From Mizuhopecten yessoensis (lineage: Eukaryota), in NCBI RefSeq assembly GCF_002113885.1, contig NW_018406643.1, positions 66,378 to 130,377 of the forward strand: 64,000 nucleotides of DNA. Reading direction: 5' to 3'. The translations under genes and the position numbers were made by a program. Under the pieces are notes generated by a model. That model did not search any database. It was not told where the DNA came from and was given only the letters and a program-made list of their open reading frames with translations. Below are positions 20,152-61,485 of the stretch, one piece after another (positions within the stretch are counted from its first letter, which is position 1; the number at the start of each line of letters is the position of its first letter).

Positions 20152-20370
20152 CCGGAATCCCGAGACAAACGCCCCCACACCCCAGGGAGAGTAAAATCCC
20201 GGCCTCCCCTTCCCCCGCGCCAGTACCGCCCCCTAGATGTGTATGACCGCAGGAGTGCCGATACCAACGACCGTTTCCTTGTTGTCAAGACTCGAGCCCC
20301 GCCCCGGAAACCACCACGCCCAACAATCAACTACCACCAACATGATGACGCAGTTTTTTCCGTGTACTGA
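20152..20370 (+). CDS. Cluster gene A exon 2 (terminal)
   Basis: Acceptor tgttattgcag|CCG, phase 0; PESRDKRPHTP...RPLDVYDRRSADTNDRFLVVKTR...stop, homologous to terminal exons of B, E, F and G. Confidence 0.8.
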   Translation, partial: PESRDKRPHTPGRVKSRPPLPPRQYRPLDVYDRRSADTNDRFLVVKTRAPPRKPPRPTINYHQHDDAVFSVY

Positions 20371-23300
20371 AGACTATTTAAATGGACACTGAAATCAAAT
20401 TGGATGATTGACATAGGTTCAATGATACAAACATGTTAAGTGGTTTACTACAGGTTCTCACAGTTTCTGAAGATAAACACGATTTAAGTTGTACCAAAAT
20501 TTTAGTTTTTTATCTAGAATATTTCTTATTATGGTGTAGGGAAGTTGAACCATGTTTTGTCCTCTACTGATGCAGCAATGAAACCTGTCTTATTTGACAT
20601 CCTGTGGAACACATCACATTGGTCAGATTAGACAGGAACTGTGAATGCACATGTTGTATTTGACAATTTTCATAAGAATGAAAGGCTGACATATTTTTGT
20701 TGGATTATTACATTTAAGACTCTGTAAATTTCAATTCAATTTTTCTCTATGTTAAGGGGGTAAACGCACAAACGTTGGTTTCAGGATCGGCGAAGACTCG
20801 GTGACCGTCGCCACTTTCGGAAACGTCGTAAACGAGTTTCTCGTTGACGGAAAATGCCGACAGATTCCGTTTGGAGAACAAGATGAATTCCACACAATCT
20901 AAGTATATCAAAAGCTAGTTCATAATGAAAACAAAGTTTAGAAATGTACCGTTACATGTAGTTATTGAACTGAGGCGAAGCGTTGACCACTTTTACACTG
21001 TGTATGATATAACAGACTATTACATTTCATCATACTGTATACAGCTTTCTATTATAAGCAAATGAATGCAAGTCCGTGGTAGGAAACCTTAATTAACTGT
21101 GGTGTTGGGTACTCTACAAATGTACTGAGACAAGAGACACCCTATTATAGCCTATATTTAAGGGCTGTACATGGGTTTCCTCTGATTTCCGGAACTAGTT
21201 TATATTACCGTTATTTTTTCCAGTATCATAGAGGTTCTGAAGTTTCCATAATTACAATCAATAAAATAAAATTAAAATGTAAAGTGTCAAAAAAGAAATG
21301 AGAAGTAGCTGTATTTTTCTTACATCTATCATCTTTCTTCCTTAATATCTGGCTCATTCGATTTTCAGGAAAGGTACAATGAAGGGTTTTTGATGTGTAT
21401 ATTGAATATTCACATCCAGCGAAGGTTAAAACTGAGAAACCCTTTAAAATTGAAAATAGACCCGTCCTATATAAGACAATGCTACTTAGCTTACAGATCG
21501 GCAGGGAAGGGGTTTGAAACGTGCCAAAACGCAATAATACTTTCACCCGAATGTATATATAATATTAACCGTATTTGTGATTTATTTGGATATTATCATT
21601 TTCAAGGAAAACAATATCATCTAAAATACTTATTAGGTTTTTCTCCTTTGAAATAATGTTATTAAATGTGTAACTTGTATTTATTCAAGAAATGTCATAC
21701 TCGGAGTAATTGTGTTATTATCATTATGGTACAGTAGACTGTTGTTCTAAGACAGGGACAACACTGGGTTGAAGTTGTAAAGCATCATCGCCCGAGGAAA
21801 GTGACGTCACCGAATCGGTAAATTCCGCTAGTGATCGGTACTTTCCGATGTTTGTGAAAAGAACGTGTGATTGGAATCTATATAACCAAAATTCGGGAAA
21901 TGTGTTGCTAAGGACGCATGCCATTTTCAATATAAATATTTTGTGCCTTTAGTAAATTAACGAAGTCTAAAAGTAGATCCAATGCAGATATTAAAGGCTC
22001 CTATAAGTGTGCCGCAACTCTTTTAGAAAGATTATAAATGTTACATAGCATACATCCTTAATCAGACATTTTATTATTTTTTATTATGATACCAGGAAAA
22101 CAGTTGAAACCTGACATACAACTTTTCTCCCACAAAGAGTGTTAATAAATGGGACGTTGCAAAGAATTGTATTTGCTTGATAAGAATTATATTGGGTCAC
22201 ATGACAGGGGTTTTGACACTCTATTGAGTGTATTTGTTCAGTTCTATTCTCGGCACGTTCGTTTCATTTCATCCAAACGAAGTGAGCCAACTCACAGGGA
22301 CCGGAGAATTTGTTACAGCTATATTTTGACCTAAGCTACATTCTCAGGTCCCTGTGAACCAACTCTATTACAGTAAAAAAAGAATGCAAAGTAATTCTGG
22401 GTAATTGATTTAGCCTTGAGGAGAATTGGTTAAGTCGTGTAGGTAAACAACAGTGTGCCGAATCACTCGGCAGACGACCCACCTGGTTAATCAATGATGT
22501 TGATAAAGTACACTTGGATAGATAAATAAAAGCGATTCGTTCTTTTAATTGGTATCATTATTTTGCAAACAGTTTCATTGGCAAATAAAATATTGTCATT
22601 TGAGTATAGTTCTATAGCTCTATAATGATAGCTCTAATGGTTGCTAGTTAATGTCGACAATAACATTGTCAGGAACTATTGATGTATTCGTGATTAGAAC
22701 TCAATGCCAAACAGTTACTGCGAGTGTAAACCAAGACTCAAACGCTAACTAATTCGTGTTAAGGATCCCGCAGCACTGCCAAAAACCGTAACAAGCTTAA
22801 GCTTTAGGAAACGGGTTTTTTCCTTAATCATTTCTGAAAAGAAAAACAGGAGAGAAAAAAATAGCAATCGAGTTTGGTCAAGTGTCAGAAAGGGACGCGA
22901 AGATACATGTAGGCATAATGTGGCCCTTCTTTTCGCTCCCCAACGAGTGGTGGTGTATAATCTAACCCGAGCTAGTTAAGTTTACCGAGTGTCTTTCACA
23001 ATTGTAAGTATGATAATATATACCATCACGAGTCTGGGGACCCTTTTCTCCATAATGATCAGATAGTACACCTATAGAGCACCATCTGTCTCTCACGGAA
23101 ATACATTATTCCTGTTCCCTATGGGGAAGCAACGATGACCTCAAAATGAAAGATGGCGTCGCAAATAATTGTTACTTGACGTCATAGTTCGAAGATTGAC
23201 CAATGAAATCACGTCCACGATGTTACCCACTAGTGGGTTACCAAACAATGGTTAACCAACTCCTAGCAGGTGTATCCAATGAGTTGGGATTAAAGAAACC

Positions 23301-25649
23301 CATAGTGGTTGTAGAAGAAATGTACTTATGCAATCATTTATTAATGTACGTAATCCTATATACAAAGATGTTGATTTGATTTTTGTAATAAATATATTAT
23401 GTAACAATGGAATTGTCATCGCTTTGCTTTTTTAATACATTGAGTGAGGAAAATTATAGCAAAAATTGAAGTCATTGAGCTGACGGGGTTTTTTTCCTCG
23501 TGGAAACGACGAACCTCAATCCTACAGGTACCCCAATCAACAATCGCCATTTATAAACATACAGTGGTCCCTTTTTGCCACAAACACACAGGGATAATCA
23601 CATGAAGTTTAGCTCTCGGTATACTAGCAACACAATGTGTGGTATATGTGTTAATCAATAACAATCGAAAAACTTCAGCACTGAAATGATTTATGGACAT
23701 TGTTCAAATGGAAATATGCATGTGCCGTCTCTGGGGGCCAATATTACTTCACACGTCATTCAACAAGGGAGTAATTTAAAATCTATATTCTTGTTTACTG
23801 AAACACACTACAAAAACTATCACCAAAATCAATATGAACGATCAGTGGAATTGAGTGGCACCCGTGATGAATGGTAGATGGCATTTACCAGTCACGTGCA
23901 GGTACGGTCACGTGATAACAAGATACACGTCAGATAAGCCAACTACACATGGTTACACCGAGCTTGCGAATGTTTACAATGACGAATTAGTGTTGCTTCA
24001 AATATCATGACAGAAAATATGAATTCCGGTTAATGTTTTAAAAGATTGTACCCTCGTAAGGTCAGAACTCTTCAAGTTGGAACTCTATGAAGTATACCAT
24101 GAAAATAGAGAAAGATGTTTCATCAGAGTTTGTTAAGTCAGACCTTGAATATTGGAAATGGAAAAGAGTCGCCTCCTTCTGGCGTTTACACTTTGATAGC
24201 TCCCATTGTGACGTCAAAATATCCCTGAGAAATGCAGTAATTTTCTCTGAACGAATTTTCATACGTTCCATCTTGTTTAATGTTGATATGAATATCATAA
24301 TTTCATATCAAATATAACCAACAAATTCATTTTGCTGACTATGTGGTTATATCGACTCAAACAGTGATATAGACCCGAATTCATCTCGGTTAATATACTT
24401 TCACAGGTTCATATAACCACATATTCACCTCAATAAAAGACCATAATTGACATTATCTCAAAGTGACTACGGCGTCTTTGGCAAATCGAGTCAAGGAAAT
24501 GCGAACTTTATTTAATATAAGACAGCATATTTTATGAGATGAGATATATATATGTGTATATATGGGGTAATAACCTTATGAAACATCAGTGTTTTAATCT
24601 GATCGACCCGCTGACATGCTCTTTCAAAATAATATAGTGGTAGGGATACACTGCTTTAAAATCATGACTGACATGTACATGTATATATATGTATATGTAT
24701 GTATCTGCATAGAACTGTACTGTGCTACATCTGTACGCTAGCATGATATGGGGAGTGGAAGAGGGGTAGATGAGTTTAAAAACTCCCTAGATAAGACGAT
24801 ATGTCGGTATGTTAAGGACAAATACACAATATGTGCCTTCAACGATACAGTTAAGTCGTTTCGTCGCACCGGATCGTGACGGAAGCATTGTTTTACAGCG
24901 CTTAAAGCCCCAACACCCGTGTACATTGTATATAAGTGGGCCTATCGTTAACGGTTTATATTACCAAACCGTCTTGACTTCCCTGATAAGGTTCCAATAA
25001 AAAAGATTACAATTGTTTGCGTTAGATTTCTTACCAGGGGAAATAAGTCCCCCGAATTACATGTACGCACGTACCAACAGCGATATCATTTATGGAAAAA
25101 ATATATGTATATAACAGGATTTCAAGCACCACGAAAAATTGATTTTCCGTCGTCGTAGTGTTGGTGGCGTTGGAGGTGGCTTTATGTATTTTTATAATGG
25201 GACTCAAAGAGATATTTCAATGTAAGGTAGATTGTTTACCTGTGTATAAGTAGTAGAGGGTTATTATTCAATTACGGTAGAGGTGAAGGGTACAGGCAGG
25301 TGCTCGTATCGTAATAACCGTTGCAGTGTAAGAGACATTTACAGGTTCTCCATGCTACATGCCATATGAGTCATTAGTGGAATACATTACACACGTGTGT
25401 CTGGTTAACATTTTTGTAAAGACTCCTATATAGGTGGTTTAAAATCCCGGGAACGATATAGTATCCTTGAGCAACGAGACATTATATCTGGACGATAGGT
25501 GTGATATATATGCACACCTGGATATTTTACCTGGTCGCTTTCAGGTGAATGTATAAAGGTTTTCAACGCCAGTCCGTAAAGATAACTACTACACGGGACG
25601 GGGTATCGGATGTATATGTCATAAGGGACGTCCCCTTTCTAGAAACAAC

Positions 25650-26408
25650 ATGGCGCAAGGAAACAGTTCGTCTAAACAAATTGTGGTGACAAATCGGCGA
25701 AAGAATCCCTCTCAACAGGCCGAATTAGAGGCAATAACATCACCGCGACAAACACTTGGTAAGAAACCACACCCCTCTCGATTCGAAGGAGGCGTGCAGA
25801 TTTCGTTGGAAACGTCGGAAACGCTGATATCTGCTAAGAAATCTAGCAAGAAAAAATCCAAAAATTCTAAGAAAGGTGAAAATTCCAAAGCAAAGGATAG
25901 AGAGACATTAAAGAATGTGAAAGATTCCAGTGCAAATGAAAATGTTATTCCGAAGGATAAATTTAGTAGTCCGGTTAAACTTATTCCTAGACCTGGATCC
26001 GAGGATAGCGTTAGTTCGTCGATGAGACAGGAAAGGGAACGATTGTCTTCCCGGAAAGAAAGTTCGTTCTCCACCTACATTGAGATTACCCATAATGCAT
26101 CTCAGGACCTTATAGTGGTAGAAAACGCCGATTCGGATTGGTCTGACTCTGTTGAGCTTATTCCGGAAGTTGAAAATGTGGAACCCCTAAAAACTGCAAA
26201 ACCGGAAGTTGATAAATTAACTGGAGAAAATGAAGCAAAACCAAGGACGAAAAAAAGGCGCGATGAAAAGGGACGACTAAGGTCAAACTCTGCCAATGAC
26301 AAGGACGAGCTTGAGGATCGAGCGAAACACGTGATTTTGATAGATTTGGAGACGATTACACAGGAAGTGCATGCTGAACCGATTTATGTCCCTTACGACA
26401 TATGGGAG
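25650..26408 (+). CDS. Cluster gene B exon 1 (253 codons); ~337 aa spliced
   Basis: ATG in good context (acaacATGG); ends HVILIDL...EPIYVPYDIWE at donor GAG|gtttgt, the same position as in gene A. Confidence 0.82.
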
Positions 26409-26519
26409 GTTTGTCAAACTTCTAAACTATGCATGTGTTAATAGCACTTAACAGGTTAACCCATATAATAGGGGGGTTTACCGTAAACTGTGAACTCGGT
26501 CTTATGCAGTGGCAGGTGT

Positions 26520-27068: not shown

Positions 27069-27323
27069 CCCAAACGACGCACGCGCAAGAAGGGCAAGCA
27101 GACGATGGTGCGCGTGGGGGGAGGCTTCATGGACTTGCCATACTATCTCCACTACCACGTGCCAATAAAGGTCTACCAGCTTAAACCGTACGCCCAGCTC
27201 TTCAACAAACATATGCTCATGATCAAGTCTAAACGGCCGGAATCGGCCACAGACCACAAACAATATGACCGGCCGAGCTGGACAACCATGAACAAAGGTT
27301 TCAAAGCCTTTGCACGTATATGA
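27069..27323 (+). CDS. Cluster gene B exon 2; partial GAS2-related (GAR) motif
   Basis: Acceptor tttatctcttccttag|CCC, phase 0; PKRRTRKKGKQTMVRVGGGFMDLPYYLHYHVPIKVY...MLMIKSKRPESA...PSWT. Confidence 0.85.
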   Translation, partial: PKRRTRKKGKQTMVRVGGGFMDLPYYLHYHVPIKVYQLKPYAQLFNKHMLMIKSKRPESATDHKQYDRPSWTTMNKGFKAFARI

Positions 27324-29560: not shown

Positions 29561-29642
29561 GAGGGCCGCAGTGGCCAAGTGGTTAAGGCATCTGACCGTC
29601 TACGACTACTAGTCCTCCGCCATTTGGTCACAGGTTTGACGT
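29561..29642 (+). mobile_element. Truncated tRNA-derived SINE head (second family)
   Basis: gggccgcagtggccaagtggttaaggc (A-box-like) and degenerate B box ggtttgac; no full cloverleaf. Confidence 0.5.
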
Positions 29643-32106
29643 GAATCGCCGATAAAGACGCAGGTCGGTGGTTGCTGTAACTGGACATAAGCAAGTCTAG
29701 AAATGTATACATTGTACCTGTGTTAAATGATTTACATGTTATAATCATATATGTATACATTGTAGATGAGATGGAGGCGATTTAAATATCGTATATCTGT
29801 ATTGTAGATCGATAGGTGTGATGGGGAGATAACCCCCTACGATACAAGTACACATGCGAAGCTTTACTGTACGAGCAAAATTTAAATACTGTGATATTCT
29901 AACCGGAACGAAACCGATATTAGTCAATATACGTAAAACGTGTTATGTGTGGAGCCTTGTCAGCTTCATATGTCGTAAACTTTAGTTGAAAAATCAACCG
30001 GACAGGTATTTTTGATACTTAACGTCTCGTAAATTCAGGTAAAAATATACAATGCACAGATAGTTTTAATCTCCTTCACATCATATAGTCATCGGTCACC
30101 GTACATATTGAGTTTACATTCTGAAATTTGACATTTTAAAATAACGTTAAAATGAATTTTTGTTTATGATGTTTTCCAACAAAGCTAATTCGGTAAGATA
30201 TGACAGATTAACATACAGGATTCCAAAAAATTAAATGCAATGCCTTGCATGCATATGGTTTTGAAGATTTATCTTTAACCTTTAATGAGAACACGGGGCT
30301 ATTAAGTATATGAATACTGTCAAAAATCTTCACCAACATTACTGCTATGCAAGAACTTTTCTTTTGGCGGTAGCAAATACAGTAATTATTAACCTTATTT
30401 ACTAATAGAAATTTCGAGGATGGGTCCTTTTAGATTAACTGATACCATATCTATGAATTGTTCAACTCGGAGTTTGTTTTTAAGTCGACTTGTGACCAGT
30501 AATACTTATACATAGAAGATGAAGCAACAAAAAGAAAACGTTTTGTCAGTGTAAACCATCTCTCGATGGTCAATGTATTTTGTAATCGTAAACACCTGTA
30601 AATTGGGTTCCCATTTCGATGTTATGCAGGTAAAGCGTAGAATGGCAGTGTAAAAGTCCTTAGTTCTTCCCCTGCATTCGGGGTTTCTTTAATAAATCTA
30701 TTAAACCATCGTTATATGTGATTGTATGGAATATTTAAATTGACTTTTCTTAAAAGTGGAAAGAGCAATAATATATATCAACTTGCTGGTACTTTTTACC
30801 GTAAATACGAAACTTTTTTTCATATTAGCGATACTTCTTTTAAAATTTAAACTTCAATATAGAACTAATCTTTGGTATCAAATCAGTCATGGGATTTAAT
30901 GTAAAATCGCAATACGGCCTGAGAAAGACTGAGATCCCGATTACGTACCGCTGATAGCATGTATTGTCTGTGGAAAATGAATCCACTGAAGCGACAAACC
31001 AGGGTCCCACGTTCAACGGCCCGGGGCCGATAACAATGGAGCTGTGACCAGGACAAATCGCACGAGGCGAAGCGACGTCATAGGGCACAATGGAGGTCTC
31101 CAATATCTTGAAACAATGACGGTGAATTCGATCTCCGGATATCTCCATACAGGTGACGATAGACTCCAATTTGGCAGGGAAATGTCGTCTGTCACATATC
31201 TCAAGGTATTTCTTACATAGAAAGGCTTGACTTAAAACAGATCGGAAAATGGCATCCTAACACACAGCATAGATTCTTTCTGTGTGGTACTATCAAAATC
31301 GCAATTAAGAATTGCTTAGTGTTAAAAGAATTCCGGTTTGCCTTTTTTTCGACTTACATTAGAAGATTCGAGTTTGTGGATTTGGGTTGTGATTAAGACC
31401 TGACTTGTGTAGATGAATGATTGATGAAGGAATTAAGATAGCACATCTTGATATAATAACAGGACGACAGGATGGACACTCGTCTGACATCCAAGTCATT
31501 TTGTTGATTCGCTGAGTGCTGGAGTACTCGTGTGTTTCATATTTACAAATCGGACCGTAACAACTTAAAGTGTGAACGAATTAATCAATCGAAAATGGAG
31601 CTGTATACCATAGTGTTCAAGTTGATCTATTACATAATATATAAGGACGTGTCTAGGATATCAGAATCCCGTCGTCTAAACTGGACAACCTGACAATTTA
31701 CCATCGGAATTCATCCAGAAATATTGACGCTTTAATCCCTCGTGTTTTGAACGAGGACGGTAGTTCCCGAGATTGAGACGAAGCGACTCTTTAGTGCCGT
31801 TATACATATTAAGTGGTAGATCGCGTATCTTCTGTAAATCGCGGCACTGATGACCGTGAACTATGACGGTATAATCCGTGAGAATAATCAGATGGAATAT
31901 TATACATATGTATACATTTATATTGATTTTTGGTTAACGGTCGCGTATATTTTTATCCAGGTATACGTTTAAACTGGAATAATGTATCAGTGTGAAAATT
32001 CATAAGGCAGAAATGTTCCAAAGATCTCTGCCTGTTCCACGTATCTCGAAAATTTCAGTGTGAAACAAATATTTAATGTGAAAGAAATCCTGACGATTAA
32101 TCCGAA

Positions 32107-32706
32107 ATGGCGAGTGAGTTTTTTGCAAGGAAGTTAAACCTGGAGCTGGCCTTGAACCCGCTGTTCCATGGTCCGCACGAGGAGCTTATGGAGGAAACAC
32201 CCCCGGAAAAGGAGGTCAAGGCCCCGAAAAGAAGAGAACATACACATAGTGCTTCGCGAATTCATGGCGGCCATAACACCGGAAGTCAATCAAAATTCAC
32301 CACCGGAAGTCATATAAACAGTTTTGAGTTTAAAAATCGCAATCCGAAAGGTGTATATGACTTTCTTAAAGTTAAAATGGACCGTGAGATTGCTAGAACT
32401 AAAACGACTAAAATTCGAAAATTCTCTGGCAAAATAAAAAAGGTGGATGAGACAGAATCCGGAAATAGTGATAAAACAGAAAGGGTAGAAGTAATTGTCG
32501 AAGTGGAAGCGGATACGAAAAATACGGAAAGAACTAGTGATACATCGGAACCTAACAGCTATCAACAGACAGTAAAATGTGTGGTTCCAAAAACCGGAAG
32601 TGAAAAGACAGGCATGGTACCGGAAATACTACATTATTCGGACGATTTTTCAGAGGGTCCTTTGGAGGTGTATGAGCCGGTATTCGTGAGGTTTCCGGTG
32701 TGGAAG
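32107..32706 (+). CDS. Cluster gene C exon 1 (200 codons)
   Basis: ATG context gaaATGG; ends PEILHYSDD...EVYEPVFVRFPVWK at donor AAG|gtataa, phase 0, homologous to the exon-1 ends of A and D. Confidence 0.8.
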
Positions 32707-36210: not shown

Positions 36211-37800
36211 CAGCGAGTCAGAAGTTGTGGCCAAAACATGTCGGACGGATGGACAAAGTGGCGACTTTATGTATCCCGATTTTTTTCTAGGAGCATAACA
36301 ACAACATGGGGACCACAAGTTCCGGACGGTTATAGAAGCTTTTTGTTCTCATTTCTGAGGGCAATAAATGTAGTTCACTGACGTAACGCACTCGCGCTTT
36401 TTGGAAAGATACTAGGCAATCAATTCCAAGTCAAAAATATATCGAATAATATGGAATTCCTCTTCGTTAGAGATAAAAAAAAACAAAAAAAAAAACATAG
36501 CAATGGGACATTCCACCTGGTCTTTTTGCGAGGGAACGCAATAGTATCGTTACTGCAGAGCCAGGATTTTGTAAACATTAAAAAAAACGAAATGATTATA
36601 ATATAGTATAAATAAACGCTGCACAAAACTGGAACTCTTCATTGGAGATAATTCACAGATCGCTGGAACACTCCACCTTAACGTAACAGTTAATGTAGTC
36701 ATTCCAATACTAGCGTGGTTTATAAATGTCACATCCTGAGACACGGTCTGGTTTCTCGTCGTTTATAATGGCATTCCACCCTTGTTGGAAATTGATTTTA
36801 TATCGTTCCCGAACATTAAAACACTCGTAAATAATTGGTGTCCCCAGATCGATAATGGCGTTGTGTATTTAAACGACATGAAGGCGGATATTGTTCGTGT
36901 GTCTATGGCTGGTCTGCTCAATACACAGGTGCAAAAAAATAATACATTGGTGGCCTTTCTTTTTGTTTATCAAACCGTAAACCCGTTTCACTAAATTCTC
37001 CGTTGTAAGTAAGGTAGTGTGGCTAAATGTGAACACGCTTGTATACAATCAGAACATGGCCTGTTTGGCACAACGTTCGGGACTAAATGTGAAATTATTT
37101 TATTTTATTACCCATTTTACAAACTGATTGTATATAGCTTATGACTGTATAGCTTTCCAAGTCATTGTAATATTTGTTTTTTTACGCCAATTGTATATGA
37201 TGGAGGCCGTATCGAGTATCGATATATAGGCGTGCTTTTAAAAAATCTAAAGATTCAATATTTTATTTATGTTTATGCTTATTAGTTATTTTATGAATGG
37301 GGCTTTGTATAATAATCTGAATGTTGGCATTCCAACGTGTTAATAAACAGTGTTTATTTGTATGTATACCTTCCCATGTACGCCGCCTTACCTGTTGTAT
37401 AGATATCTCATTGTGACGTGTTATCATAAGGACAGGTAAGACACCTGGATACATTCCCCCGTGGCGTTCATCGCTATCGGATCTAGAACAATTTTATTAT
37501 GAACCCTCGCTGTAGTTAGCTTTCAAGTATTCAGGACTTTAAACGACATTTTTGTACCTTAGTATATAAACGCGGCCAGTTACTCACGTACCTGGATCAA
37601 TCAACGCCGAGATACGTTTGTGTTTTATATCCCGTTCGATAGGATTGAGAAAAGTGTGATTGACTAGGCCACTTGGTGTTGGTCAGTGTGGTCAACACGT
37701 ATGTGTATTCCATGTGCCATAATCGCCTTGTATTCAGCCAGGCTGTCCTAAACCACAATCGCCATCACTGGGGCGCTCTACTTTCATTTCGTGAACAACA

Positions 37801-38547
37801 ATGGCCACCATCGAGTGCTGGCAACCATATACGCCTCTGGACCAATTACTTTCCTCCACCCTAGTGCTGACGGACGGAGAGGGGGATGTCGAGCACGTGA
37901 AGAAGGAACTCCCAAGGTCAACCCGACGGGCCATCAAGTTCATACGGAACCAAAAACTCCGACCGAGACCCGGTTTCCAACGACGGGAGACTTGGATGGA
38001 AAACCAGCTTCGGTTATCAGGAGACGCTGTTTACCTCGACCTGGTCAAGACAAACAATCACTCGACTTTACGGCGTGAATCGTCCCAGTCAAAAAACTCC
38101 TCGACAGAAAACAAAAGACGATGGATTCATTTAGATTTATTAATGGATCCAAGTATTAAGGAATCTTCCAAACGCCTCGTCAGGACCCGTCCATCACAGA
38201 ATGTCGTATACAGAAGGGAAAATGTGGATAGAGCTGTATATTCATTAAAAGAACCTTTTGAGCCTATCCCGGTATACGAACAGCAGATACAGAGGATGGA
38301 AAAGCGTTCAAGTAGAAGCCCTAGACATACCAACAGGATTAAGCGTCTCGGTGATTCTGACAGGAGTAAGAGTTTGGAAGACATCGATAGAAGTGAAACT
38401 CCGCGTGATGGTTCAAAAGGAAACAACACAGGGGTCGTCTCAAAACCAAAAAACTACACCGAGATTCTTCATTACGTCGACGACGCAAAATCCATGGGTG
38501 CAATTGATTCGTTCGAACCTATCTACGTCATCAACAGGAAATCAAAG
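37801..38547 (+). CDS. Cluster gene D exon 1 (249 codons)
   Basis: ATG context acaATGG; ends TEILHYVDD...DSFEPIYVINRKSK at donor AAG|gtatgt, phase 0. Confidence 0.82.
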
Positions 38548-42002: not shown

Positions 42003-42731
42003 ATGAAGTTGTGTGAAGAACTAAAACAATGGAAACTTTTCCTACCAAATCAACCTCTTATGTTACCTTTTGCACCGAGCATGCCTAGACGGAAATCCCG
42101 ATCTCGGCCTCGCCGGAAACGGAAACCACCAGACCCACCGGAGAAAGTTACCATCACAGTGAATGACACAGGTGGACGAACAGTTGCCGTGGAGCGCGTA
42201 GTCCCCAAACGAGAAAAACAAGTCTTGCGGAGGCTGAGCAGAGAGGAAGCAGGCGAAAATGAGGCTGCAAATAGTCGATCTCAAAATATATCAACACAAA
42301 CTACTCTACAGGACCTTGAATTTCTCATCACGGACCCCCGAATTCAGGAGACCAGGGGGCCGAGGAGGGCGTGGCTGCCCGAGGAGGTGGTCTACACGCG
42401 CCAGACCACTGCCCACCGGACTTACCACACGGGCGACACCACCTTGAACGTGGAACATAGGTCCACAGATAATATTGTTGTCCAAATCGACAAACACGGC
42501 TCCGCCCGAGTGGACAATGAAAAGGGACAAGAGGACAAGGAGAACGGACGCAGGGAAAACGAACATGGACAAAGGGTAGAAGGGGGAGATACGAGGGACA
42601 AAGAAGAAACAAACAGAAAGTTTACAAATAATGGCAAACGAATTACATTTTCAGACGAAACTGATAAGACAATGGCACAGACCGACAAGGAAAAAACGGA
42701 CGGAACGACAAGTGTTCGTGCCCCAAGCAAG
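42003..42731 (+). CDS. Cluster gene E exon 1 (start uncertain; frame open from 41949); ~331 aa spliced
   Basis: First in-frame ATG at 42003; ends ...KRITFSDETDKTMAQT...VRAPSK at donor AAG|gtaagg, phase 0. Confidence 0.78.
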
Positions 42732-43404
42732 GTAAGGAGCAAATTACAACAAGTCGAATCTCATACAGCTAGTATTCGCTACACCTACTCGGAGATTAAT
42801 TGTGGATTAAATTTCAAAGTATAAAATACCAATCAAGTCGGTTGACGAACCAGATCTGTAAATAATGAATCGGAATTATATTTGATATGTTCTAAATTGA
42901 GGCTACACACGGCGACCCCGTGTATATTGTTTACATGGTATTCGATATATTCGTGAGATATGGCTACACAGGGGACGATGTGTCCGATTGAATTACAATG
43001 TTATGTTTTGATCGGGTGAATTCTTTTACAATAATTTATTTTATTTAGTAAAATGTTTTGTAACTATATTAAGACAATGGCTTTCTGGTTGCCTTCGTAA
43101 CTCTTGGTTATAGTTTCTGGCGAGACTTACTGAACGGCTTTGCCTCATCTCCCGAGAAAATATAAATAATTCCAGATCAAAAATACAAGTCTCTGCTGTA
43201 TTTCATTATGTAAAACATTTTACTTTTTACCTTGGTTACATGTTACTGTGTTACCTATGACCTTTTTAATAGTTGAAGTCTCCATGCATTTGAAATGTCA
43301 GGGAAAGATTTTATCGTAAAATACTTAAACACTTACAGGTATCTTTTTTTAAATTTGAAAAGTTGGGTATATGTATATGATTTAACTTGTAACTATTATT
43401 ACAG

Positions 43405-43671
43405 GTGGCTAAAGCTTGCGGTCATAAGCTACCAATGGTTCGTGTTGGAGGGGGGTGGATGGAAGTGCCAGATTATCTCCGTTCTCACGTACCGATGCAC
43501 GTGCATGTCGAGAATACAAAAGACGGACAAGAAGGGAACTTGATAATCAGGTCACAGCGACCTAGATCACAAATGTTCTCGAAAAAGGGAGAAAGTCCGA
43601 GCTGGACGGCAACACTGAGCAGGGGTACCAAAGGGAGCGCTTCAACGACAATGAGACAAAGACTTGTGTAG
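43405..43671 (+). CDS. Cluster gene E exon 2; partial GAR motif
   Basis: Acceptor ctattattacag|GTG, phase 0; VAKACGHKLPMVRVGGGWMEVPDYLRSHVPMHVH...NLIIRSQRPRS...PSWT. Confidence 0.85.
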   Translation: MAKACGHKLPMVRVGGGWMEVPDYLRSHVPMHVHVENTKDGQEGNLIIRSQRPRSQMFSKKGESPSWTATLSRGTKGSASTTMRQRLV

Positions 43672-44442: not shown

Positions 44443-45098
44443 TACTAGTATATATATATGTACTCAGAAGTTCAATTACGACATTACCTGCCGAAAGGTC
44501 ACTGAGTACACCAAAGTGAAAATCCCACTCGCTTGTTACTGGTGCACTTGTGTCCTACTTTATTGGTTATAATGTTTTACATTTTAATAATATTTTATTT
44601 TTCATAACTTTTAATATTTGTATATTTGTGTGCCTTTTCTTTGTTGTCAATCATTAATAAATCTATCTATTTTACTAGTTTTGTTTCAAGGTTATTTTGT
44701 ACACAATTGAAAACAGATTTTTTTGGTAAAAAAACAACAACAACATAATGCTGCGCTACTGGATATCTTTGAACCTGATAATATATATTGTTTTGATTGA
44801 TATGTGTTTTCAGTTTAACATCAATAACAACTTTGACTTAGGTTGGCAAACATTGAGGTAAGGGAGATAATCCCTATGTATTAAGCGAAAAAAATCATAT
44901 CCAATGAAAGATATTTTTTTAAATGATGTGAAAAATAATCAAACTACGATATACGAACGTGTTGTTTCCCCAAGGGTCAATATACATCTAAATTATCAAT
45001 ACCAGGTATTTGTTTTGAAACGGTCGACCAATCGGAAACTTTTAGAGAACGAAATGTCATAATTAAGATACAATCACGATTATTAGAAGGATATGCAA

Positions 45099-45290
45099 TG
45101 GTTGGTCAAGTGGCGCATTGGATAGCGAGCTCGCCTGTCATCAAGGCGGCCGGGGTCAATTGCCCGACTACGCGGGTTTTCTCCGGATGTTCCGGTTTCC
45201 TCACACATTAAGACCCCAGGCGCTGTCATCCGGGTCAACAAGAGAGATGAATAAAAGTTGATAAAATTTGATTGACAATTGTTGTAAAAG
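45099..45290 (+). mobile_element. tRNA-derived SINE with V-domain-like core, copy 2 (internally deleted)
   Basis: ggttggtcaagtggcgcattggatagcg...gcgggttttctccggatgttccggtttcctcacaca; homologous to the 17402 and 51850 copies. Confidence 0.7.
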
Positions 45291-46424
45291 AACTTTAAAA
45301 TTTACAATGGGACATCGATCACTCGGAACCCTCGGAAATCAATCTTACCTATTGCTATAACTAACTTTTATGAAACCTTCCAAATAAAACATTTATATTT
45401 CATTATATGAAAATTGATTAATATGTTGTGTCCCACAGTTTGTTGGATAGACAGGTTAATCTTTCGGATCTGCCTTTTCTCTCAATGTATCACGGTAGAC
45501 GAATAAATGATACCAATATGGAGTATCCCAAAATGTGTCGAATTAAACAGTGTCCAACGTAAGTTAATTTGATTGTTATGCAGTATTCCACAAAGTGTCG
45601 AACTACACAGGTTTTCCTGTGGATTTGATATATAAATCAAACTAATCTACTCTTGATATTAATTCACTCCATTAATTATCATTTACTGTAAATAATCAAT
45701 GTATATCTAAAAGAACACCTGCTGATTCATGCAAATAAATCCCTATCCAGATAGTTCAATATGGACGTTTCAAAACAAAAACCTTTCTTCCACGTGTAAT
45801 ATGATTTATCAAGATAAAAAAAAAATAAAAAAATGTTTAATTAAAATATGAAAATATCAACGTATGGGAAAGTTAAATGCATGATATATCAGGTAATTTG
45901 TTTAAAGTATTGGTGATGCGTTCCTAAAAAAATCACATATCCGGGAGTTTATTTTAAGGTAATGTATCGTACCGTTGAACAGCAATGTCTTCATTTTTAA
46001 ACTCGCTACAGTCCCATTCAGAAATAATATGTTAGACTCATTTCACGAGTTGTCTATGGTGTGAACTTTAATACCGTTATTACATATGTATATATATTTA
46101 CCTGTATCAGGCGTACTTTTTATGTAACTTATAATTCGGTAACCTGTTTGAAAACCTCGTCAAATATCGCCTTCAGATATAAATGTATACACTTATATGA
46201 ACCGTCATAGGTACAAACATTCAATATAATTGTATAAGTACACCGTATTGTTCACTTTAGAATAACATAACATGTATTCATCTGATACACAGGTAGCTTG
46301 ACACTGGGGTCGTTCGTACGCCTACTCATATAAGAACAGTATTTAAATTTAGTTAGTCAAGTATACCTTAAACATTTTGTACGTGTCCCACAACGATCAA
46401 AGATATCTTTTTAATAGCAGCAAT

Positions 46425-47597: not shown

Positions 47598-48509
47598 ATG
47601 TCTCACAGAGAACATCGGACATCCTCGTCAAGGCGATCCCGGAGACGTGAAAAGCGGAGCGTGTCGGATGATTCCGATGATGGCGGCCGGATTGTTGAAG
47701 TGAGGCGACGTCCGGCGTCGGCAAGCGACCTCCGACTTCCCGAATATCGTCATAACACCAGTGACGAGAAGGGACAGAAAAAGGCACACCGGAAGGAGAA
47801 AAAAATCACGCGGAACACCAGAGAGGAACGTACTCTCGAATATGTAACAAATAGTGGACATCACGAGCAGCGCCGACCCGTAACGAGGGCGGCGTATCAG
47901 AGTGACGGCGAGGAGATTAATGACAGTGATACCGGAAGTGATAGTACCGTCCGGCGCATGAAGGAACATATGCGCTACTACGCAACACAAAATACCCAGG
48001 CTGCGTCGGAAACAGGCGAGCGACGCATTGTGTACTATAATGCGCGTAACAATGGCCGTCCAATGTCGGACGTCGGCACACAGCTCGTGCAGCATGTCCG
48101 ACAGGACAGTATGCGAGAAAACCGACGTGTCAGCAGACCTCGGTCGGCATTCAGTGAACAGATCTTACATACACGAGATGGCGACCGTCTTGTTGAGCTG
48201 GAGAAACGGGAGGAGGGCAACAAAGTATATTACAACTACCGCCTGAAGGAAGAGGCCAAGCCGCCTCCAGTCCCAGTCAGACGCATGCGTAACGTGGGGG
48301 TACAAATGACCACTAAATACGTTGTTGATCAACCACCTCCGGTCAAAACCAAGAGCGCCGGTACCCAGACTCCGGCACCACCGCCCAAACCTCGCCCAAG
48401 GACACCTCCAAGACTGATTAGAGTAGTTCGCCCAGAGACACCTCCTCTTAGAGTAGTTCGCCCAGAGACACCCCCTCCCGTGGAGGTTATGGAGCCCGTA
48501 CCCGCAGTG
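47598..48509 (+). CDS. Cluster gene F exon 1 (304 codons); ~377 aa spliced
   Basis: Arg/Ser-rich then Pro-rich ORF; ends EVMEPVPAV at consensus donor GTG|gtaagt, phase 0; clearly similar to gene G exon 1. Confidence 0.87.
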
Positions 48510-49301: not shown

Positions 49302-49523
49302 ATTCCAAAGGCCAAGTCAGTGATGGTGCGCGTGGGAGGAGGCTGGATGAAGGTCGAGCATCATCGCAATCATCACATACCTGTCAAAGTATACGAACAT
49401 AAGCGACGTGCTAGCGCTGACGATAACAAGTTCCTTTTCATTAAGTCCCGGTTCGCACGGAAGAAGAAACAAGTACCAATAGCTTATAAAATGTATAGAG
49501 AGAAACTGGCACAGGCCAACTAG
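49302..49523 (+). CDS. Cluster gene F exon 2; partial GAR motif
   Basis: Acceptor ctttctcactctttcag|ATT, phase 0; IPKAKSVMVRVGGGWMKVEHHRNHHIPVKVYE...KFLFIKSR...VPIAYKMYREK. Confidence 0.87.
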   Translation: MPKAKSVMVRVGGGWMKVEHHRNHHIPVKVYEHKRRASADDNKFLFIKSRFARKKKQVPIAYKMYREKLAQAN

Positions 49524-51849: not shown

Positions 51850-52050
51850 CAAATTGTTTCAAGTTTTAACTTGTATAAATCAATTTTATTGGCCCGGATT
51901 TTAGTGCACAGGGGATCTTAAAGTGGGAGGAAACCGGGGTACCCGGAGAAAACCCACGTACCGCCTACCTTTTCACGTCCGATCGGGGAATCGAACCCCA
52001 GTCGCCTTGGTGAAAGGCAAGTGCGCTATCCACTGCGCCACCAGACCACC
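51850..52050 (-). mobile_element. tRNA-derived SINE with V-domain-like core, copy 3
   Basis: Minus strand ggtggtctggtggcgcagtggatagcg (A box), gggttcgattcccc (B box), cgtgggttttctccgggtaccccggtttcctcccac core. Confidence 0.82.
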
Positions 52051-53730
52051 CGAAAAATTAAATTATCCTATCATCAAAAGACATAGTCATCATGACCGTA
52101 GCTCTTGCCAAATACAAAAACTCTTACTTGAAGATTAAAACAGGCAAATCAAATCTTCTCTCAACCTCGCCGCTATGGAATCACGATCGACTTTCGCCTT
52201 AAATAATACATGGGTGCTTCAGAAATATGAACCGCTCATTTGGGTTATATGTAGAATAACCATGCATTCTTACAGATGATCGATAAGTTCGCGTGGTATT
52301 GATATTTTACAATTGATGTAACACTACGATTATTAATGGGTCTCTGGTGTTTATACTTTATCAAATTTTTAATAAATTTAGTTTCAAGTTAGATATTTTG
52401 TATTCGGTATTATGATAATCCTAATGTAACAATGAAAGCAATGTTGAACCTAAAATCGAACTTGTATTCTGTGATGTCAATATAAGTATCACACTCTAGA
52501 ACAATCTTTCTTCAAAGTAACATCAGCTTTGAACTAGCATTGTGAACCATTTATTTGGAGATTCCGGCAACACTGAAAATCGATCTGATGTTCTCGGTAT
52601 ATTTCGGAATTGGAAGACGTGCTTGCCGGAAAGGCCCGAAAATATCCGATTGTACTGAATTACCTTCGTGTTTGCTGATTGGATTATAAGTTTGAGTACC
52701 CTCACAGATCAATATCGGCTAATAACTTCTAAATGTATTCGTTATGAGTTATGTAAAACAAAATCCGCCGTTGTGTACATGTCCTGGTACAAACATGCTG
52801 ATCCAAGAGATCGCGTTGTACGCTTGCGCTGGATGAATGTTGTCATGGCGACAGGACAATGCTTAGTGTTTCATTTCAATATATTTGCTACCGAAAAGAA
52901 ATGTGTTGCTCAAAGGAGATTTAAAATCTTGTAAACACTGTAAACATACCCTTTATCATTACCAAAAAAATCTTTAATCGTATTATGAATTGATAGCTTT
53001 CATCAACAATATGGCTTTCCGAGGTAGAACGATTTGAAAAGAGAGACGTGTTGACAATGTTCAAATATTAATGATGGCTGTTCCTGCGAGGGATACATCA
53101 AACACGATATTGCGGGGTGAGAAATGTAAAGGGTATAGAATATCGCCGTACCGTTATGTAGTATGACAGGTTGGGATTGTAGATGATATTTGACCCGCCT
53201 ACATCTTAACTCCCCACATACACATACAATATAAATAGCAATTGTATGGTACTTACTATTTAACTATCCGTATACATTTACAACAATAGACACTTTCGGA
53301 TTGGCTTGGCTGTTTCCCTTGACATTAATCCAAATTTAGCTTTAAGTCGTTATGGAATGGTAAGACTTGGAATTAGAAGTACACAGTGGCCGGACAGTGT
53401 TATATATACACGAAGCCTCGTAGATCGATGTATATGACGGGTGGCAGGCAAACAAGGCATTAGAGAAGGCCTGGAAAACACTTAACCAAATATTGAACAT
53501 TTCTCGGTTGGAATACGTACGTCAACACCAGTGGTAGGCCTCGTGACGACCAGGTTTGATGACAGCTTATCAAACTTTAATTTACGTTTCGGTGTGAGGA
53601 CCGACAAGATATTTCACGGATTACGCTGAACACGTGAGGTGTGTCAGGAAAAAAGAGATGATGCATCTTATAAAGTGAATTTCTTCAAAAGTGCTTGGAT
53701 TTACTAATTGTTAAAGCAAAATTTGACAAA

Positions 53731-54318
53731 ATGTCGCGCAACGGATACACGCGTACGTCCAGACAGAACAGTGTCCGTTCACAAAATCGGAATCACTATC
53801 TTTCGGACGGATATACGGACGACGATCGTCGTTACGTCATCCGTGATGACGTCATGACGGACAAGGAGGCGTGGGTAGAGGATTACGTGTACGGCCGGTC
53901 CAGAGGGAGCACGCGCCGACCCCAGTCCGCGGTGGTGGCTTCAACGGGACGATATCGGCCTCGGTCCCCGGGACTCGTCGAGGTGGGGCGATATGAAAAG
54001 GATGGGAAAGTTTACTGTGATTACCGGATGTCGGACGAAAATTACTCAGAACCTGTCGTTATAAGACGTAAGCCCGCCCCTCCACCCAAGCCTAAAGTAC
54101 GCCATGTCGGGGTACAGATGACAACGAATTACACTGCCCCTCCCCCTAAGAAGGTCTCAACCCGGAATGCATACACTCAGACCAGAGTAGCCACGCGCCA
54201 AGCTTACACGCAAAGTAGGCCCCCGAAGACCCCTAAAAGCAAGGAACCTGTCCCCATTGTGGTGATTCCGGCCCCTTCACCACCACGGACTCCATCACCC
54301 CCTCCCCCCAAAATAGCG
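53731..54318 (+). CDS. Cluster gene G exon 1 (196 codons); ~289 aa spliced
   Basis: ATG context caaaATGT; shares LVE.....[DG].KVY..YR and R[NH]VGVQMTT with gene F; ends PPPPKIA at donor GCG|gtaagt, phase 0. Confidence 0.85.
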
Positions 54319-55218
54319 GTAAGTTGACCCCATTAACCTCAAAAACCGTTAACGTAAAAATAGTCGAATCAATCCGCGTACGTTTGATAAATAGTTACAT
54401 TTGTATGTTATCTTTTAACAGCTCATCTTTGTAATAATCAACCAGCTTCTGGGAATGTGTTTTGCTGTGAACGGGCGAGGACGGAAATAAATTCAAATAT
54501 CATTTTTGCTGTTTTTTGTTTGGGAGGGTGTACATATGGAATACTTTAGTACATGGACGTATATACAGATCTTCTTCGCTCAGTATCACTCAAGTTAGGC
54601 ACTATTTCCGGAAAAAAGGAATGTTTGTTGTATTCGTATTTGATAGATAGTGTGTCGCAGAAAAGTGGTGGCGAAACTGCACACAATAATTATAATTTGT
54701 TTATTATTGGAAGCATGTGTTTATTGATTAAGGGATGAATCGCGTTGCCAGACTGACATGATACCTGTATCCATGTGTACTTAATCAGTGATCCGTATCG
54801 TCACGCCTGTATGCGTATATACCTATATCGATCCGCTAATATTAAAGCCGGGTTACTGAGGCTGATACGGAACGGTGTTCACAAGCATCTGTCAACACGC
54901 CAGATCGCCAATCAATACAGCTACATCCGTATTGAAATTAGCAACTTGTAACGGGATAGATATTGCTTACACCTGTTATTAAGGCATGGAATGTGTGACG
55001 ATTCGCTCGAAACGGCTTAAGGGTATATGCTATCTAACAATGATATGTATCGCCTTCACACAAGAGTTAAACATACAAAATAATATTTTGGAACATATTT
55101 CCTGTAGTTTCTACTTGCAATGTGTATATCGAGACAAGTATTTGTAGAATATCCTAATGTGGTTGGGTCTAGAATCACTGGACGTGTTTTGTGATGATTC
55201 TGCTTTGTTGCATCCCAC

Positions 55219-55772
55219 GACATGTCGTAGTAGGCGACTTACGTGGGGTCCTCACTACATGTCGTGGGAAGCGACTTACGTGGGGTCCTCACTACATGTC
55301 GTAGGAGGCGACTTACGTGGGGTCCTCACTACATGTCGTGGGAGGCGACTTACGTGGGGTCACCGCTACATGTCGTAGTAGGCGACTTACGTGGGGTCAC
55401 CACTACATGTCGTGGGAGGCGACTTACGTGGGGTCCTCACTACATGTCGTGGGAAGCGACTTACGTGGGGTCACCGCTACATGTCGTAGTAGGCGACTTA
55501 CGTGGGGTCACCACTACATGTCGTGGGAGGCGACTTACGTGGGGATCACCACTACATGTCGTAGGAGGCGACTTACGTGGGGGTCACCACTACATGTCGT
55601 AGGAGGCGACTTACGTGGGGTCCTCACTACATGTCGTAGGAGGCGACTTACGTGGGGTCGTCACTACATGTCGTAGGAGGCGACTTACGTGGGGTCCTCA
55701 CTAAATGTCGTAGGAGGCGACTTACGTGGGGTCCTCACTACATGTCGTAGGAGGCGACTTACGTGGGGTCAC
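55219..55772. repeat. 37-bp GC-rich minisatellite, ~15 copies (intron of gene G)
   Basis: Unit acatgtcgtaggaggcgacttacgtggggtcctcact, head-to-tail with no spacers. Confidence 0.96.
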
Positions 55773-55997
55773 CTGCGGAACTGGGGGTTTACTTTTATGT
55801 CTTCTGTTAGGGGAACATTGAATAAACAAAAACATTATCCACTGCCCCCATCGCAACATTTTGAATCTTTCTTTCTTTTTCTCTCACTTCCCTACCGAGT
55901 AATCTTTCATTTTGGAGGTGTCTCCCTAAGTACCCTTCTTCGTATGACCTTGGCTGTTTCAAGGACGTTTAACCTCAAACAAACAAAAAACAATTAT

Positions 55998-56475
55998 TTT
56001 GACCAACCGCTAGATTCTGCATGAGTTGACCAACCGCTAGATTCTGAATGAGTTGGCCAACCGCTAGATTCTGCTTTGAGCTGATCAACCGCTAGATTCT
56101 GAATGAGTTGGCCAACCGCTAGATTCTGCATGAGTTGACCAACCGCTAAATTCTCCTTGAGTTGACCAACCGCTAGATTCTCCATGAGTTGGCCAACCGC
56201 TAGATTCTGCTTTGAGCTGACCAACCGCTGGCTTTTGTTTTGATTTGACCACCAACTGAAAAATTCTGCTTTGAGTTGACCAACGACTTACTTCTGTTTT
56301 GAGTTCACCAACTGCAAATTCTGCTGCGAGTTGACCATTCGCTAGCTTCAGCTTTGACCTACAGCTACATTTTCTGCTTTTCACAAACAGCAAGCTTTTC
56401 CTTTTGACCGATTGCTAGTCATTGCTTCTGGTCAATTGCTAGTTTCTGCTTTAGACCAACTGCTAGCTTCAGCTT
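55998..56475. repeat. 27-bp minisatellite decaying 5' to 3'
   Basis: Unit gttgaccaaccgctagattctgcatga; ~9 well-conserved copies, then degenerate. Confidence 0.9.
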
Positions 56476-60062: not shown

Positions 60063-60971
60063 GTGTGGTGGCTGATTTCGGCCATCTCGGGTTGTCGCAT
60101 TAGCGGGGGCGACAACGCGACAATGCGACAGACAAAAGATACCACGCCAACGCGACAAAATTAAGGCGACAACGCTAAAGAAAAAATCTGCCGCCTTGTT
60201 GGTGGTGGGGTACACTGCCGCCTTGTTGGTGGTGGGGTACACTGCCGCCTTGTTGGTGGTGGGGTACACTGCCGCCTTGTTGGTGGTGGGGTACACTGCC
60301 GCCTTGTTGGTGGTGGGGTACACTGCCGCCTTGTTGGTGGTGGGGTACACTGCCGCCTTGTTGGTGGTGGGGTACACTGCCGCCTTGTTGGTGGTGGGGT
60401 ACACTGCCGCCTTGTTGGTGGTGGGGTACACTGCCGCCTTGTTGGTGGTGGGGTACACTGCCGCCTTGTTGGTGGTGGGGTACACTGCCGCCTTGTTGGT
60501 GGTGGGGTACACTGCCGCCTTGTTGGTGGTGGGGTACACTGCCGCCTTGTTGGTGGTGGGGTACACTGCCGCCTTGTTGGTGGTGGGGTACACTGCCGCC
60601 TTGTTGGTGGTGGGGTACACTGCCGCCTTGTTGGTGGTGGGGTACACTGCCGCCTTGTTGGTGGTGGGGTACACTGCCGCCTTGTTGGTGGTGGGGTACA
60701 CTGCCGCCTTGTTGGTGGTGGGGTACACTGCCGCCTTGTTGGTGGTGGGGTACACTGCCGCCTTGTTGGTGGTGGGGTACACTGCCGCCTTGTTGGTGGT
60801 TGGGTACACTGCCGCCTTGTTGGTGGTGGGGTACACTGCCGCCTTGTTGGTGGGGTACACTGCCGCCTTGTTGGTAGTGGGGTACAGTGTCGCATTGACG
60901 CGTTCATTTTGTTGCCTTGTTGCGTTGGCGGGAAGGCGACAACGCGCGATGGCCGAAATCAGCCACCATAC
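60063..60971. mobile_element. Non-autonomous TIR element carrying an internal 27-bp minisatellite
   Basis: ~36-bp TIRs gtgtggtggctgatttcggccatctcgggttgtcgc / gcgacaacgcgcgatggccgaaatcagccaccatac; gtta on both sides (4-bp TSD). Confidence 0.85.
60188..60886. repeat. 27-bp minisatellite, ~26 almost perfect copies
   Basis: Unit cactgccgccttgttggtggtggggta. Confidence 0.98.
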
Positions 60972-61203
60972 GTTAAAGTGGATATTTTTCTTTGTATACA
61001 TTTGACCTGTATCTCGTTGTCTCCGCGAGCAGCTCAATATTTTGTAATCCAAAAGACACAGAGATTAGAAACTTAGCCTACCTGCCCTTGTATTCTAGAT
61101 TCTCCACCTGATAATTCTTCACAATACAGAAGCTTAGTGGGGATTAGACGCATTAAATGATGTCCATATCTCACGATCCTAAATATTGACTTTTCTATTG
61201 CAG

Positions 61204-61485
61204 GAACCACAGTACATATACGTGCCCAAGACCCGTCCAAAGCCGGTTGTCGTACATACCGAACACACCGGACGCGCAGGGTACTTGGTGTCCCAAAGGA
61301 GAAAGTCCTTGACGAGTTCCATGCCACTCAGGGTCATTGAGTACGATAACAACAGGAGTCTTAGGGACAAATATATTTACGTCCGGCCAAGGAGTGCAGT
61401 CGGACGCAGCAAACGGTCATTTGTACCTATGGGATACGAAATGTACATGGAGCGACCATACACAATACCTGATTATCCAAGATGA
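61204..61485 (+). CDS. Cluster gene G exon 2 (terminal)
   Basis: Acceptor gacttttctattgcag|GAA, phase 0; EPQYIYVPK...SMPLRVIEYDNNRSLRDKYIYVRPRSA...VPMGYEMYMER matches F exon 2 (IPVKVYE...KFLFIKSR...VPIAYKMYREK); AATAAA at 61600-61605. Confidence 0.8.
   Translation, partial: EPQYIYVPKTRPKPVVVHTEHTGRAGYLVSQRRKSLTSSMPLRVIEYDNNRSLRDKYIYVRPRSAVGRSKRSFVPMGYEMYMERPYTIPDYPR

Follow-up and report, generated by a model that had tools for sequence, protein, structure and literature searches.

In mouse GAS2, the C-terminal region (residues 271-314) is needed for dimerisation and for the bundling of actin and microtubules, an essential role first shown in 2025 (PMC12084551). Full-length mouse GAS2 and its GAR fragment 198-314 are dimers, whereas fragment 198-276 is a monomer by size-exclusion chromatography (SEC); fragments 1-276 and 198-276, both of which lack residues 277-314, are monomeric and bundle neither actin nor microtubules (PMC12084551). 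For residues 271-314, AlphaFold 3 (AF3) suggests a beta-hairpin dimer (PMC12084551). We describe a 64,000-nucleotide stretch of the Yesso scallop, Mizuhopecten yessoensis (the window; 37% G+C, with eukaryotic genes), in which a tandem gene array carries five terminal exons with a two-element motif that corresponds to this C-terminal tail of GAS2.

Members of the GAS2 family (GAS2 and GAS2L1-3) combine a CH domain with a GAR domain. Microtubule contacts of GAS2 have been assigned to R242 and K237 (beta3), R252 (beta4), W257 (beta5), and K266 and H267 (alpha2), and G254-256 form a 'G-hairpin' that enters the intradimer groove and contacts the microtubule (PMC12084551). The Pfam GAR model, PF02187, ends at mammalian GAS2 residue 271, at HDPC(R). 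The tail that follows is covered by no Pfam model, and every solved GAR structure ends where the tail begins, none including it.

We read the scallop motif as the local version of the GAS2 C-terminal tail, inherited as part of the GAS2 last exon and predicted to form a dimerising hairpin, and we put the probability of this reading at about 0.72. An earlier inspection of the letters (the sequence-only reading) had described a module matching no domain familiar to that reading. The motif is instead an already known GAS2 element, and it went unrecognised because PF02187, and with it annotation, ends at HDPC(R), leaving the tail without a model. What is new here is the architecture in which the tail occurs, together with natural loss of the G-hairpin while the tail is retained.

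The terminal-exon motif and its counterpart in GAS2

The array comprises seven tandem genes (A to G), five of which (A, B, E, F and G) have a terminal exon bearing the motif. Each of these five is a two-exon gene, in which a large upstream open reading frame (ORF) runs up to a GT donor and a short terminal ORF lies behind a good acceptor; every intron is in phase 0, and reading frames and splice sites are intact. The five peptides quoted in the sequence-only reading are present letter for letter on the + strand. Exons were compared separately, and full-length comparisons were made with the database proteins P0001 and P0048. The features are as follows, with a slash marking an exon boundary in this list and in the splice junctions below.

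18333..19655, + strand: gene A exon 1, 441 aa, low complexity, donor AWE/GTAAGT; no Pfam domain
20152..20370, + strand: gene A terminal exon, 72 aa plus stop; acceptor CAG/CCG, phase 0
20227-20295, + strand: gene A tail motif, exact match to the quoted peptide
25650..26408, + strand: gene B exon 1, 253 aa, donor IWE/GTTTGT
27069..27323, + strand: gene B terminal exon, identical to the C-terminus of P0001
27105-27158, + strand: gene B GAR remnant (MVRVGGGF plus helix), Pfam PF02187 positions 44-68 only
27159-27233, + strand: gene B tail motif, exact match to the quoted peptide
42003..42731, + strand: gene E exon 1, donor APSK/GTAAGG inferred from the Pecten orthologue P0003; start codon approximate
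43405..43671, + strand: gene E terminal exon, 92% identical to the Pecten orthologue P0003
43435-43488, + strand: gene E GAR remnant, Pfam PF02187 positions 47-68
43489-43557, + strand: gene E tail motif, exact match to the quoted peptide
47598..48509, + strand: gene F exon 1, 304 aa, Pro/Arg/Ser-rich, donor PAV/GTAAGT; splice confirmed by the Ylistrum orthologue P0004
49302..49523, + strand: gene F terminal exon, acceptor 7 residues before MVRV
49323-49376, + strand: gene F GAR remnant (MVRVGGGW plus His-rich helix), Pfam PF02187 positions 43-68
49377-49451, + strand: gene F tail motif, exact match to the quoted peptide
49470-49502, + strand: gene F distal helix motif VPIAYKMYREK
53731..54318, + strand: gene G exon 1, 196 aa, donor KIA/GTAAGT; orthologues P0045 and P0046
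61204..61485, + strand: gene G terminal exon, conserved in orthologues
about 61246-61284, + strand: gene G decayed GAR signature VVVHTEHTGRAGY
61321-61392, + strand: gene G tail motif, exact match to the quoted peptide
61423-61455, + strand: gene G distal motif VPMGYEMYMER

Two of these gene models are borne out by database proteins from the same species. P0001 (XP_021356502.1, 337 aa) confirms the splice of gene B, with the junction YDIWE/PKRR, and P0048 (LOC110452338, 513 aa) consists of gene A exon 1 plus the gene A terminal exon.

The last exons of B, E and F match only positions 43-68 of the 69-position GAS2/GAR model in Pfam, and a PDB sequence search aligns them to GAS2 (1v5r, 9kbw) and MACF1 (5ve9, 5x57). 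The segment VMVRVGGGWM-L-EFL is shared with the spectraplakin GAR (MACF1/ACF7, PDB 5x57 and 5ve9). A profile of the three last exons found 37 matches in 1.84 billion representative proteins, some of which are canonical GAS2 or GAS2-like proteins of Littorina (a gastropod), spiders and the nemertean Tubulanus, with the same tail after the GAR domain. When the nemertean GAS2 P0033 was used as a query, GAS2 was recovered from Lineus, Owenia, Lingula, Patella, hemichordates, amphioxus, shark, amphibians, birds and mammals; in each of these proteins HDPC-h-h-x-h-x-R and, close to the C-terminus, [DN]-x-[FY]-L-h-h-x-x-x-Y-K are separated by a loop of 8-35 residues, as in the mammalian example ...HDPCRMLQISRVDG...PDNYLVVSASYKAK. 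The tail with its two elements is thus present in GAS2 of nemerteans, annelids, brachiopods, molluscs, spiders, hemichordates, amphioxus and vertebrates, the fuller consensus of the elements being xP-h-x-V-x-E-x-x-R and [DN]-x-[FY]-L-h-h-K-S-K-Y-K. It was seen only in proteins named GAS2 or GAS2-like, no search in spectraplakins or GAS2L1-3 having been made.

The scallop motif has the same two elements in the same order as mouse 271-314, directly after the HDP end of the GAR helix alpha2: xP-h-x-h-x-E-x-x-R, a loop, and [DN]-x-[FY]-L-h-h-x-x-x-[YF]. Its initial 'H-V/I-P' (xP) falls on the HDP of the HDPC that ends the GAR domain. Scallop and canonical last exons all fit one 42-row alignment, and a hidden Markov model (HMM) trained solely on tails of canonical GAS2-type proteins and fragments recovers the F tail at E 1e-8 among 2109 window ORFs. 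The scallop tails differ from those of GAS2 in several respects. Their loops are 8-12 residues long and lack the SRVD caspase site, against about 25 residues in vertebrate GAS2; V, I, L or M stands in place of the HDPC Cys; and the closing YK becomes RP.S in the B/E type, while the F/G subfamily adds a helix. The 'RPxS' that the sequence-only reading placed after the motif holds as a suffix of the B/E subfamily, but it is shifted by two residues in G and is absent from A, F and canonical GAS2.

Further elements are confined to subfamilies. A second element after the tail, VP[IM].Y.[KM]Y.E[KR] (49470-49502 and 61423-61455), occurs in the F/G subfamily only and is also kept in F-type proteins of Mytilus, Tegillarca and Pinctada; it is predicted by AlphaFold 2 (AF2) to be an alpha-helix (F last-exon residues 57-72). 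The B/E type has a distal motif, [RS]PSW[TS], about 20 residues after the tail (approximately 27270-27290 and 43615-43635), which the fragments P0005 and P0006 share.

The sequences leave no ambiguity about the homology of B, E and F, with blastp E values of 5e-14 to 6e-8 between stop-to-stop ORFs and Smith-Waterman z scores of 14-25 against shuffles. A and G need a closer argument. VRVGGG occurs in the window only at B (27108), E (43438) and F (49326), 51 nt upstream of each motif. The signature VRVGGGW with a helix alpha2 ending in H-x-P is found in B (as GGGF), E and F, while A and G have vestiges only (GRVKS and GRAGY) and no PF02187 match in Pfam; in the terminal exon of gene A the place of VRVGGGW is taken by a proline-rich linker. 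One could suppose that A and G are basic, low-complexity proteins in which a short amphipathic pair of strands resembles the motif by chance or convergence, and that the GAS2 tail is confined to B, E and F. In keeping with this, an HMM of the B/E/F tails ranks A tenth (E 2.3) and leaves G outside the 12 best rows, larger tail HMMs give both 2-5 bits, and the pairs A-B, A-G and B-G score no better than shuffles. Small tail-only HMMs were replaced by profile-profile comparison and empirical-null tests for these two genes, the 2-5 bits of the larger models being uninformative. Smith-Waterman comparison gives z 6.1 for A-F (p 5e-4, 1/2000 shuffles) and z 9.2 for F-G. In hhalign, the A orthologues align exactly in register with the 42-sequence last-exon alignment (P 7.4e-5), and the G orthologues align in the correct register (P 2.4e-3), or at P 9e-4 with the F subfamily, where the alignment also spans the distal motif. 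Scored locally against 42 tail-only sequences, A averages 49.3 and G 56.6 over the 10 best scores; 167 window ORFs of comparable length, used as controls, give 24.9 +/- 2.7 with a maximum of 33.8, so that the scores of A and G were reached by 0/167 control ORFs and by 0/1000 shuffles.

Position and context tell against chance resemblance as well. In A and G, as in the other motif-bearing genes of the array, the motif lies at the same place of a terminal exon that follows a phase-0 intron. The first exon of A ends in a motif, EILHY.D...EP[IV][FY]V..WE, that is common to genes A, B, C and D, and gene G shares with gene F both the VGVQMTT.Y block of exon 1 (ORF blastp E 1e-9) and the distal VP..Y.MY.E motif. 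Seven different non-A family queries in tblastn match gene A solely at 20221-20292, and Ylistrum F matches gene G at E 9.5e-6 over 61321-61455. The motif is also conserved in orthologues, a condition that the sequence-only reading had set: in A it is invariant at 23/23 positions across four scallop genera (with Pecten maximus, Ylistrum balloti and Argopecten irradians), in a protein with 72% invariant columns overall, and lies in the second-longest invariant run; in orthologues of G about 21/24 positions are invariant and three differ. These comparisons support membership of the A and G tails in the tail family, much as the sequence-only reading had proposed, and we hold chance or convergent resemblance to be improbable. 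The longest invariant run of protein A, residues 1-28 (18333-18416), is likewise unchanged in the four genera, which suggests a second functional element.

Origin of the terminal exon and spread of the family

The tail and the GAR piece from beta4 to alpha2 lie in one last exon, with a phase-0 intron about 7 residues before MVRV. GAS2 of the limpet Patella caerulea has its last intron in phase 0 as well, at ...VVFIR/LLQGKHLMVRVGGGW, and the gene F acceptor, CAG/IPKAKSV-MVRV, has the same place and phase as Patella GAS2 FIR/LLQGKHLMVRV. The last exons of E and B begin 10 and 12 residues before MVRV, respectively. Seven fragmentary invertebrate proteins read through a Patella-type acceptor ('..fq/LL.GKH'), and in a 313-residue mammalian GAS2 the 241/242 boundary corresponds to FIR/MLHNKH, which fits the c.723+1 donor discussed for GAS2 (PMC12084551). 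Since the gene F exon starts at the place and in the phase of the Patella GAS2 exon, the family terminal exon is a copy of the GAS2 last coding exon, with beta4, the GGG hairpin, the beta5 Trp, alpha2 and the tail, as sequence and intron position together show.

The remainder of GAS2 is missing. No CH domain (PF00307, Pfam) was detected in P0001, P0004, P0008, P0015, P0046, P0048 or the exon-1 ORFs of window genes A, C, D, F and G, while Pfam detects one in P0062 and P0033. A complete GAR (PF02187 positions 1-69, with the N-terminal cysteines) was not found in P0004, P0008 and P0015, which have positions 43/44-68 only. Compared with the GAS2 family, the scallop genes thus lack CH and GAR positions 1-42 (alpha1, beta1-beta3 and the cysteines) and have instead 200-450 low-complexity residues with no Pfam match. 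Their first exons are new, low-complexity and apparently disordered, joined in phase 0 to the GAS2 last exon. The idea that the exon-1-end motif of A-D is a remnant of the N-terminal GAR half is not supported: its hhalign comparison with full-length GAS2 had P 0.13, and the alignment fell elsewhere. In F-type proteins the GAR alpha2 is His-rich (VEHHRNHH; 49347-49376) and is kept across bivalves; that it might serve as a replacement metal site for the lost GAR zinc ligands is pure speculation.

Family members are known in scallops, Mytilus ('titin-like'), Pinctada and Tegillarca, and their annotations go no further than 'uncharacterized', 'titin-like' or 'GAR domain-containing'. In a tree of last exons, all 14 bivalve-family rows fall on one side of a branch with support 94/85, with subclades of F-type (98/90) and B/E-type (100/98) members. 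On these comparisons the family appears to be GAS2-derived and pteriomorph-bivalve. It is larger than the seven window genes, since the 705,815-bp scaffold that holds the window also encodes, outside it, a further F-type member, P0015 (Mizuhopecten LOC110452332, 548 aa). The sequence-only reading had called the tail motif the true family hallmark; this is too strong, VRVGGGW being conserved to the same degree as the tail across the wider bivalve family. What marks the family is the inherited GAS2 last exon in its entirety.

Genes C and D (32101-32706 and 37795-38547) have family-type first exons with good phase-0 donors. In tblastn with 50 family queries against the window, no terminal exon of their own was found, significant matches being limited to the five known terminal exons. 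The next-best match, a Lys/Glu-rich stretch at 2917-3021 (E 0.032), was rejected as a sixth terminal exon.

The incomplete state of C and D could mean that the tandem genes are decaying duplicates, with terminal-exon conservation that is residual and not functional. G was not found as an annotated Mizuhopecten protein, and RNA depth is low: in RNA sequencing (RNA-seq) data from four scallop runs, gene E has a depth of 1-2.7 over 42117-42647 in exon 1 and 0.5-2.2 in the terminal exon, with none over most of the intron (42825-43355), and no D-to-E or E splice junctions are listed in these low-depth runs. Against decay, intact orthologues of A, E, F and G, 80-92% identical and unchanged in the motif, occur in Pecten, Ylistrum or Argopecten; F-type genes are kept across scallop, mussel, ark clam and pearl oyster; and all reading frames and splice sites are intact. 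We consider residual conservation in dying copies scarcely credible.

Predicted fold and possible role of the tail

AF2 models the F last exon (model m5cbe306f7c3e) with strands at 25-34 and 43-51 followed by a helix at 57-72 (mean predicted local distance difference test score, pLDDT, 79), and the Tubulanus GAS2 tail with strands at 298-303 and 307-312 (block pLDDT 63-74). Overall, the AF2 monomer models have two tail strands at pLDDT 63-85; published AF2 and AF3 predictions disagree. A beta-hairpin fold of the tail is plausible at the moderate confidence of our models. Foldseek with the F last-exon model against PDB returned nothing at E <= 0.001, the sole family match covering 21 residues of 9kbw, and in a VIA wide structure search with the same model the best match, at Z 3.5, was a generic hairpin plus helix. 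The possibility that the tail hairpin is a copy of GAR beta1-beta3, by circular permutation or internal duplication, was rejected; hhalign of the tail with the N-terminal GAR half aligned only 9 columns (P 0.016).

Several observations count against reading the motif as an inherited, dimerising GAS2 tail. A and G are not significant in tail-only HMMs, whether built from B/E/F, from 33 tails or from 18 canonical GAS2-type tails; the hhalign probability for G is 12-23%; and the canonical GAS2-type tail HMM misses the B and E tails. The last-exon tree rests on 77 columns, and long-branch joins in it were flagged. Coverage in the four RNA-seq runs is thin, at about 3 at most, and they list no junction reads. 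The mouse GAS2 tail is helical in AF2 and a hairpin in AF3, and it is unseen in cryo-electron microscopy (cryo-EM) maps (PMC12084551). Finally, a half-GAR without the Zn-binding core may fail to fold or to bind tubulin.

The beta-hairpin interaction module put forward in the sequence-only reading holds up in part: the hairpin is plausible from the AF2 models and an interaction role is plausible by analogy, because the homologous GAS2 region is needed for dimerisation, but the module is not specific to this family. GAS2 offers the closest parallel, its C-terminal region being encoded by the corresponding last exon, behind an intron of identical position and phase, and predicted to form a beta-hairpin. 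By that analogy, the tail would start at the DP of HDPC (strand 1), pass through a variable loop and end in strand 2, [DN]x[FY]Lhh..YK, folding as a beta-hairpin that would mediate homo- or hetero-dimerisation. R252, G254-256, W257, K266 and H267 fall within the GAS2 piece retained by the family. In B, E and F, beta4, the G-hairpin and alpha2 are all preserved, as is an aromatic residue in beta5 (Phe in B, Trp in the other two), with equivalents of R252, GGG, W257 and H267; these elements hold most of the GAS2 microtubule-contact residues mapped by cryo-EM. B, E and F may thus still contact tubulin or microtubules, though without the zinc-binding core. Unlike GAS2, A and G carry the tail without the GAR signature; with their GAR piece Pro-rich or decayed, they would act as dimerisation-only partners or decoys.

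A tail homologous to that of GAS2 could have some other role: an intramolecular latch on GAR or CH, an element for regulated cleavage or degradation (vertebrates have a caspase site, SRVD/G, in the loop), or a strand that binds filaments directly. Caspase cleavage at D279 sits just after strand 1, and the tail is flexible and unseen on microtubules (PMC12084551); the GAS2 deletions take out 277-314 as a block and do not thereby map contacts; and gene A has retained acidic stretches, DVYD and SAD, where the site would fall. A latch is harder to reconcile with the SEC results, in which GAS2-GAR (198-314) is a dimer and 198-276 a monomer (PMC12084551), so that the CH domain is not needed, and with A and G, in which the tail persists although no GAR signature that a latch could hold is recognisable. 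The SRVD site, for its part, is restricted to vertebrates, and neither the length nor the sequence of the loop is constant. We judge such other roles unlikely and favour dimerisation through the tail as its probable function.

Other features of the window and meaning for the family

The remaining features are repeats. A stretch of about 90 bp at 40039-40130 has an RNA-seq depth of 170-285 in all four runs, with fixed differences from the window sequence and a loose end on either side; it resembles an interspersed repeat that is expressed and present in several copies, outside any local gene. A long tandem array at 60076-61002 (49% G+C), with a 27 bp unit translating as AALLVVGYT, lies inside the 6.9-kb intron of gene G, just upstream of the terminal exon. 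Other tandem arrays are found at about 600-1040, 3700-5300, 13800-14600, 55150-56400 and 63330-64000. Three copies of a short interspersed element occur at 17440-17660, 45060-45300 and 51870-52135, recognised by ORFs on both strands that resemble one another (E down to 4e-14).

Hearing loss is linked to truncated GAS2 variants in which the C-terminal region, and part of GAR, is missing. Our alignment narrows the GAS2 tail to two short elements and a free loop across Bilateria, which gives concrete residues for mutation. We offer, tentatively and as a proposal more apt to fail than to stand, that the GAS2 last exon is an autonomous portable module, a tubulin-groove G-hairpin plus a dimerising beta-hairpin independent of the zinc core, that has spread onto disordered scaffold proteins in pteriomorph bivalves; the tail-only variants A and G might then heterodimerise with GAS2 or with other members of the family and tune microtubule-actin cross-linking. 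The scallop genes are natural experiments, in which the tail stands with half a GAR or without the GAR signature, and its retention in both settings argues that the tail works on its own. An uncharacterised, tandemly expanded family of scallop genes can now be defined as GAS2-derived.

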